Part shown: positions 530 through 790 of the stretch, one piece after another
Layout: every line of letters starts with the position of its first letter
How positions within the stretch are numbered: the stretch's first letter is position 1
IMG/VR virus record: IMGVR_UViG_3300046703_000335
Coordinates: 62,001-126,000 of that record
Direction: 5' to 3' (one strand)
Length of the DNA stretch: 64,000 nt
Notes under the pieces: model-generated
Told to the model about the DNA's origin: nothing
Databases searched by the model: none
What the model saw: only the letters and a program-made list of their open reading frames with translations
Position numbers and translations under genes: made by a program

Positions 530-790
530 TTAGCTTTTACCAAACGGAGTATTAGCCCTTACTGTTATGTTCCCGTTTGAGCTAATTTCTATAGCATGGT
601 CCCTGAATTCATCCATGCCTACATCATATTTCTGGGCTAATGCCATACGAATTTGATCATGATTAACAGATGATGGTGTTATCACTGTTCCGATAGTGAT
701 ACCCAATGCTTCAAATCGATCTTGTGAAAAAAGATCGCTAAACTTAAGATCATCCTGTCTTCCTCGAAACATTACATGGATATCCTGCAT
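530..790 (-). CDS. small putative ubiquitin-like (beta-grasp) protein ending ...GNITVRANTPFG-KS
   Basis: ATG at 790 has GGAGG 5 nt upstream (better than GTG 796). N-terminal IHVMFRGR strand and C-terminal GNITVRxxxxFG resemble small proteins I recall next to TROVE-vWA and ThiF/E1 genes in bacteria (recollection, unverified). Confidence 0.5.
   Translation of the reverse strand: MQDIHVMFRGRQDDLKFSDLFSQDRFEALGITIGTVITPSSVNHDQIRMALAQKYDVGMDEFRDHAIEISSNGNITVRANTPFGKS

Follow-up and report, generated by a model that had tools for sequence, protein, structure and literature searches.

A predicted ubiquitin-like protein encoded beside a Ro60-like gene in a conserved gene module of huge phages

Comparative analysis of the virus record IMGVR_UViG_3300046703_000335 showed that a gene for an 86-residue protein is the first gene of a conserved huge-phage module encoding a ubiquitin-like protein (Ubl), a Ro60-like RNA-binding ring protein, an OB-fold protein of 285 residues with an invariant cysteine (here called p285), a JAB/JAMM peptidase, and a ThiF-type E1 activating enzyme; this points to an undescribed ubiquitin-like tagging system tied to RNA quality-control machinery. 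The DNA analyzed (the window) is a stretch of 64,000 nucleotides, positions 62001 to 126000 of the single 210,408-bp record, which IMG/VR classes as linear and about 45% complete, so that the phage is probably much larger than 210 kb. In 12 fetched loci from huge phages and metagenome-assembled genome (MAG) contigs, the same genes recur in the same order, usually with JAB and in some cases as 4-kb operons. No canonical E2 was found, and conjugation itself is inferred from the anatomy of the module, not demonstrated; covalent attachment of the C-terminal Gly to targets was not assayed here.

The observation made in the first-pass annotation, an 86-residue open reading frame (ORF) with a Gly masked by a two-residue extension next to a TROVE-like gene, is confirmed. 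The translation ends in NITVRANTPFGKS, the ATG is preceded by a Shine-Dalgarno sequence, and homologs start at the same Met; an alternative GTG start at 796 would add only two residues. The gene is not a chance ORF, since a word-based search found 12 relatives at 64 to 99% identity and a profile search of 1.84 billion representatives found 33 clusters, with more distant members read directly from related loci. No Pfam, PHROG, NCBIfam, or PADLOC model matched any of 35 family members, the protein and its family gave only chance hits and no Ubl in PDB sequence searches, and a tblastn search of GenBank phages returned no match; by sequence the protein was not placed in any named Ubl family (ubiquitin, ThiS/MoaD, Prok_Ub, and others).

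The interpretation offered in that annotation, a pro-Ubl whose E1, E2, or JAB genes might follow the TROVE gene outside the window, is supported, except that no canonical E2 is present, only a candidate E2-like domain in p285, and that conjugation is not demonstrated. Lack of conservation of the C-terminal FG had been named in advance as grounds for rejection, and the alignment came out in favor: Gly84 is the only invariant column among 35 sequences, of which the most distant are 23 to 30% identical to this protein, and the preceding residue is aromatic in over 90% of them (F in most, sometimes W or Y). Seventeen sequences end exactly at the Gly, and the others continue for 1 to 6 residues without any conservation (G, GD, V, W, I, K, A, S, C, NA, GE, LINI, and SGASRK); within the closest clade alone the tail reads KS, RS, EN, KD, E, S, or nothing, and further members in loci L008 and L019 to L025 (L numbers denote fetched loci) fit the pattern. 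This is the pattern of a protein whose C-terminal Gly carboxylate is the functional group and whose tail is discarded. The other condition set beforehand, a fold other than beta-grasp, was also not fulfilled: the predicted fold is beta-grasp-like, although with low scores. An AlphaFold2 (AF2) model built on the family alignment (pLDDT 82.8) has two strands, short helices, a main helix, two strands, and a disordered tail at residues 83 to 86. Its top 50 structural neighbors are almost all beta-grasp Ubls or MoaD, aligned from residues 1 to 2 through residues 81 to 86, so that the C termini coincide; a Foldseek search of the PDB gave no match at an E value of ≤0.001, although ubiquitin and GB1 appear among the weak rows.

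The prediction about the flanking DNA, which was to be checked for ThiF, E2, and JAB genes, holds for the E1 and the peptidase. We examined the 18 kb preceding the window (L001) and found, on the same strand downstream of the Ubl gene, the Ro60-like, p285, sigma-like HTH protein, JAB, and E1 genes listed in Table 1, with JAB 4.2 kb and the E1 9.5 kb downstream. The record contains exactly one member of this Ubl family, one ThiF E1, and one JAB, and searches of it found no ThiS/MoaD match and no canonical E2 (UQ_con or Prok-E2_B), leaving the Ubl as the only visible E1 substrate. A 189-aa ORF overlapping the E1 start was considered as the E2 and rejected, because it has no family hit and the gene in that position in a 595-kb phage is unrelated.

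Table 1. Positions of the module genes and of other features noted. Unprefixed coordinates are those of the window, C1 coordinates (G000:C1) are those of the phage record, and L coordinates are those of the fetched loci.
Feature	Coordinates	Strand	Remarks
Ubl gene	530..790	-	86 codons plus TAA stop (530-532); ATG 788-790; Gly84 539-541; dispensable K-S extension 533-538
Shine-Dalgarno GGAGG	796..800	-	5 nt upstream of the ATG
Ro60-like (TROVE + vWA) gene	1..471, continuing to C1:60909 (C1:60909-62471; L001:16909-18471)	-	520 aa; first 157 codons in the window
p285 gene	C1:60036-60893	-	285 aa
Sigma-70 region-4/HTH-like protein	C1:59322-59861 (L001:15322-15861)	-	179 aa; between p285 and JAB, with several small ORFs; not shared with the 595-kb phage
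JAB/JAMM peptidase gene	C1:57958-58371	-	137 aa
ThiF-family E1 gene	C1:52391-53065	-	224 aa; PF00899, E 1e-27; lies after more unrelated genes
tmRNA gene	C1:51518-51921 (L001:7518-7921)	-	within a few kb of the E1 end of the module
tmRNA gene, L012	L012:9637-10005		as above
tmRNA gene, L013	L013:18937-19357		as above
Radical-SAM-like ORF and 210-aa ORF	C1:49540-51479 (L001:5540-7479)	-	beyond the tmRNA; the former 291 aa with CxxxCxxC near its N terminus, the latter methyltransferase-like by eye only; neither conserved with the module in the other loci compared
103-aa ORF	846..1157	-	just upstream of the Ubl gene; conserved in position (104-105 aa) in the closer relatives; no family hit; function unknown
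Terminator-like hairpin	1200..1244	-	strong; between the RNA genes and the 103-aa/Ubl genes
tRNA-Ile (anticodon TAT)	1436..1508	-	full length
tRNA-like RNA	1775..1898	-	D, anticodon, and T arms, no acceptor stem; tRNA model match at 1807-1866
Partial tRNA match, L004	L004:8992-9052		upstream of the Ubl gene
Partial tRNA match, L014	L014:9311-9370		upstream of the Ubl gene
Partial tRNA match, L020	L020:5597-5657		upstream of the Ubl gene
Genes around the L019 module	L019:153-539 (-), 10219-12100 (+)	-, +	contig filed under a Nanoarchaeia MAG; module followed by an AAA_33 kinase and a WGR-PARP protein; BubE-family (PF20137) gene and RNA ligase nearby
Ro60-like gene, L020	L020:6410-8004		called as two ORFs (323 and 176 aa); could be a frameshift, an assembly error, or a real split
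Distant Ubl-family members (P0045, P0044)	L009:10001-10279; L015:8523-8723		bacterial-looking contexts, no E1 in view; one next to a Macro-domain gene at a contig end, the other in a cyanobacterial MAG between RecJ and an EF-hand protein
Large ORFs	2000-64000	-	nearly all large ORFs of the window, several of 1000-1550 aa; not analyzed
Repeat-rich ORF	5627-7369	-	580 aa; fiber-like by eye; not analyzed

The description of the neighboring gene as TROVE-like is also confirmed. A profile of eight relatives of the 520-aa protein has Ro60 proteins as its four best hits in the PDB, namely human Ro60 (9nen; E 2e-4), phage phiRo60 (9l5y and 9kop; E 3.5e-4 each), and Deinococcus Rsr (2nvo; E 0.18), with the alignment running from the late helical region through the vWA domain. 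The vWA domain (VWA_2) has an invariant DxSxS together with the T and D of the MIDAS motif, and protein language model neighbors include TROVE/vWA_Ro60 clusters (0.94 to 0.95). The features expected of a Ro60 protein, a HEAT-repeat ring followed by a vWA domain with MIDAS, are thus supported, although the protein is too diverged for Pfam's TROVE model, which gave no hit, and it was not folded here. Upstream of the Ubl gene, next to a full-length tRNA-Ile gene, lies a tRNA-like RNA that matches the Rfam tRNA model only at positions 7 to 64 (51 bits) and sits on a 13-bp stem formed by its flanks (minimum free energy of -37.9 kcal/mol; z -3.8). The same partial tRNA signal lies just upstream of the Ubl gene in L004, L014, and L020. 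This RNA is a candidate Y-RNA-like partner of the Ro60-like protein, but no Rfam Y-RNA family matched and covariation was not examined, so the observations do not decide whether it is one. tRNA genes flank the module in all loci examined, and a phage-encoded tmRNA gene lies nearby in three independent loci; a promoter scan found fewer promoter-like sites than in shuffled sequences and was not informative, and sequencing reads were not used.

The key result came from comparative genomics. The Ro60-like protein has a 42%-identical relative in a 595-kb uncultured phage (LR756511.1), and an all-against-all BLAST comparison of the ORFs of the two regions of about 20 kb found only five shared genes, which are colinear: Ubl (hhalign probability of 95%, aligned through to a terminal Gly), Ro60-like, p285 (33% identity), JAB, and E1 (48% identity). 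The five genes are syntenic in many unrelated contigs; the same set and order recur in contigs L012, L013, L014, L019, and L020 and in species-representative MAG contigs from KSB1, Selenomonadaceae, and Myxococcota (L021 to L025). In L013, L019, and L021 the genes form one tight operon of about 4 to 5 kb; in L021 the five genes are contiguous within 3.8 kb, and the Ubl also ends in FG-KS. In short contigs the Ubl gene overlaps the start of a p285 gene (L010) or is followed by a Ro60-like gene (L011). The E1 is present in all 12 loci with enough flank, whereas JAB is present in nine loci and was not detected in five (L012 and L022 to L025). All five JAB-less loci have a Ubl that ends exactly at [Y]G, whereas five of the nine JAB-containing loci carry a tail; this fits a processing role for JAB but is suggestive only (Fisher p 0.09, and the loci are not independent). 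JAB is also kept where no tail exists, which fits a second role as a deconjugating enzyme.

The catalytic motifs of both enzymes are intact. The E1, a bare adenylation domain, keeps the GxGxxG nucleotide loop, the DxDR...N...Q and DxFDN...R adenylation motifs, an N-terminal Arg, and an invariant Cys in D[VI]C[ED]Y[PA]LA. JAB (Prok-JAB; E 1e-4 to 8e-6) keeps the Glu, HxH, Ser, and Asp of the JAMM site, with the E...HxHP...SxxD motif conserved in six aligned members. A complex prediction for the E1 with Ubl residues 1 to 84 scored 0.71, but a control reached 0.54, and this counts as no evidence either way.

p285 belongs to a large family of 886 clusters (E < 1e-3), all annotated as hypothetical. 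The protein has two OB-like barrels plus an alpha/beta domain with E2-like topology; its N-terminal two-thirds are OB/S1-like barrels typical of RNA binders, and its AF2 model (pLDDT 85) shows an N-terminal helix, a long helix, a four-strand meander, a loop with the invariant Cys252 in AG(x)[IV]CL[SAQ]G, and a final helix; the Cys, in AG(x)[IV]CL, is invariant even in the most distant members. This topology and motif resemble a minimal E2/RWD domain, and two of the five weak structural hits to this part are RWD/UBC-like. The E2 assignment is a hypothesis, about as likely as not: no sequence model of E2 matches, the domain was not folded alone, and the evidence for a UBC fold with a catalytic Cys does not settle the matter in either direction. 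Searches with all 34 members against Pfam, which gave no match, and with the C-terminal domain profile against the PDB, Atlas features, Atlas shapes, and BFVD yielded only OB/S1-like similarity for the N-terminal part and nothing decisive for the Cys domain. A rhodanese-like reading of the Cys loop was rejected, because the loop tolerates a six-residue insertion and the predicted fold is an antiparallel meander.

Our results suggest, with moderate confidence, that the 86-aa protein is a ubiquitin-like modifier made as a pro-form in this phage. In this view, JAB would remove Lys-Ser, the E1 would adenylate Gly84 and probably take it as a thioester on its invariant Cys179, the Ubl would pass to a target, most likely through Cys252 of p285, and JAB would also reverse the conjugates. 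Given the obligatory Ro60-like partner, the OB barrels of p285, and the tRNA-like RNA encoded upstream, the likely field of action would be an RNA-surveillance or RNA-decay particle, either its own subunits or whatever it holds. The analysis establishes the gene, its family, the invariant C-terminal Gly, the labile tails, the intact E1 and JAB motifs, and the conserved five-gene synteny, while processing, adenylation, thioester transfer, the E2 role of p285, and the target are inferences from them.

A less likely alternative is E1-only conjugation, as in archaeal SAMP/UbaA, in which the Ubl would be attached to lysines without any E2 and p285 would be an RNA-binding adaptor or the main target rather than a thioester carrier. 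This is consistent with the absence of any known E2 family match to p285 or anything else in the record, with the OB/S1-like barrels, and with the E1 having its own invariant Cys; against it, p285 has an invariant Cys in a G-x-[IV]-C-L context after a four-strand meander and before a helix, occupies the E2 slot of the Bil gene order, and is present in every module, including the minimal four-gene ones. A sulfur carrier role, in which Gly84 would be adenylated by the E1 and converted to a thiocarboxylate that donates sulfur to, for instance, tRNA, tmRNA, or a cofactor, as for ThiS/MoaD/TtuB, with JAB trimming the tail as QbsD trims QbsE, is unlikely. The best family hits of the E1 are ThiF of thiamine-type systems (below their cutoffs), MoaD is among the best structural neighbors, the module sits among tRNA genes and near a tmRNA gene in several loci, and a radical-SAM gene lies a few kb beyond the E1 in this phage. 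However, no sulfur acceptor or relay gene (ThiG/ThiH, MoaE, TtuA/NcsA-type PP-loop, rhodanese, or cysteine desulfurase) is among the conserved genes, the terminus is [FWY]-G rather than Gly-Gly, the ThiS Pfam model does not match the Ubl or the record, and JAB is kept where the Ubl already ends at Gly, which suits deconjugation better. A noncovalent beta-grasp subunit or adaptor of the Ro60-like particle, whose C-terminal carboxylate could dock on the vWA MIDAS metal while the E1 and JAB act on something else, is very unlikely: although beta-grasp domains often serve as adaptors, the ligand of the Ro60 MIDAS site is unknown (PMC12135203), and the Ubl gene is most tightly linked to the Ro60-like and p285 genes, this reading leaves unexplained the E1 in every complete module, the lack of another candidate E1 substrate in the record, and the tolerance of unconserved tails only where a JAB is present.

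The nearest described system is the type II BilABCD operon, whose order bilA (Ubl), bilB (E2), bilC (JAB), bilD (E1) is mirrored by Ubl, p285, JAB, E1 and whose JAB trims up to nine residues after the conserved Gly of a small beta-grasp Ubl (PMC10557695). There is, however, no sequence match to Bil proteins (PADLOC gives only generic JAB and E1-E2 hits), the E1 is a minimal domain of 210 to 225 aa, the E2 slot holds an OB-OB-plus-Cys-domain protein, a Ro60-like gene is an obligatory fifth member, and the carrier is a huge phage rather than a defense island. In PADLOC the E1 scores best against Cap2-type E1-E2 models of type II CBASS (E 1e-17) and JAB gives weak Cap3-like hits, but here a separate Ubl rather than a CD-NTase C terminus would be activated, the E1 and the candidate E2 are separate proteins, and there is no cyclase or effector. 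Archaeal SAMP/UbaA/HvJAMM1 and bacterial ThiS-MoaD-TtuB sulfur carriers share a minimal E1, a beta-grasp protein with an essential C-terminal Gly, and a JAMM partner, but here the terminus is aromatic-Gly rather than Gly-Gly and there are no sulfur-pathway partners. Atg8 and Atg12 are Ubls whose reactive Gly is preceded by an aromatic residue, masked in Atg8 by a short tail removed by a protease; they are eukaryotic, use a cysteine protease rather than JAB, and, for Atg8, have a lipid target; this comparison was not tested here, and no homology is claimed. Phage and bacterial Ro60/Rsr are TROVE ring plus vWA proteins with small structured, tRNA-mimicking RNA genes just upstream on the same strand, to which the tRNA-like RNA upstream here may correspond (Thermus phage phiLo phiRo60 with Yrl1/Yrl2 [PMC12135203]; bacterial YrlA [PMC4201824]), but those papers describe no Ubl, E1, JAB, or p285 partners, and the term "ubiquitin-like" does not occur in PMC12135203. 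vWA proteins have been seen with bacterial Ubl systems (PMC7159879), and TROVE proteins have been noted in a few jumbo phages as RNA-repair factors, with no mention of Ubl genes (PMC7824862). Asgard "Nidhogg" viruses are reported to encode both a Ro60 (TROVE + vWA) protein and ThiF/E1-like proteins (bioRxiv 10.1101/2021.07.29.454249), but these were annotated separately, the E1s were proposed to hijack host ubiquitin, and no virus-encoded Ubl, JAB, or module was described. Full-text literature searches found no paper describing this Ubl family, the p285 family, or the five-gene module, although absence from the texts searched is not proof of novelty.

Bacterial ubiquitin-like conjugation (CBASS Cap2/Cap3, Bil, and Bub) has so far been described as host defense against phages, whereas here the phage side carries a complete-looking set of its own, built around a Ubl family that no database names and welded to a Ro60-like protein. 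The function of the vWA/MIDAS site of Ro60 proteins is an open question (PMC12135203), and a genetic link between Ro60 and a Ubl/E1/JAB system gives a concrete, testable handle on it and may also explain earlier separate sightings of Ro60 and E1 genes in large viruses. If p285 is an E2, its family would be a large unrecognized class. We tentatively speculate that huge phages, and some Myxococcota, KSB1, and Selenomonadaceae MAG contigs, carry a self-contained ubiquitin-like conjugation system with an E2 of a new OB-fused type and with a Ro60-like ring and a tRNA-like Y RNA as its substrate or scaffold, which would mean that protein tagging directly controls an RNA-surveillance or RNA-decay particle during infection.
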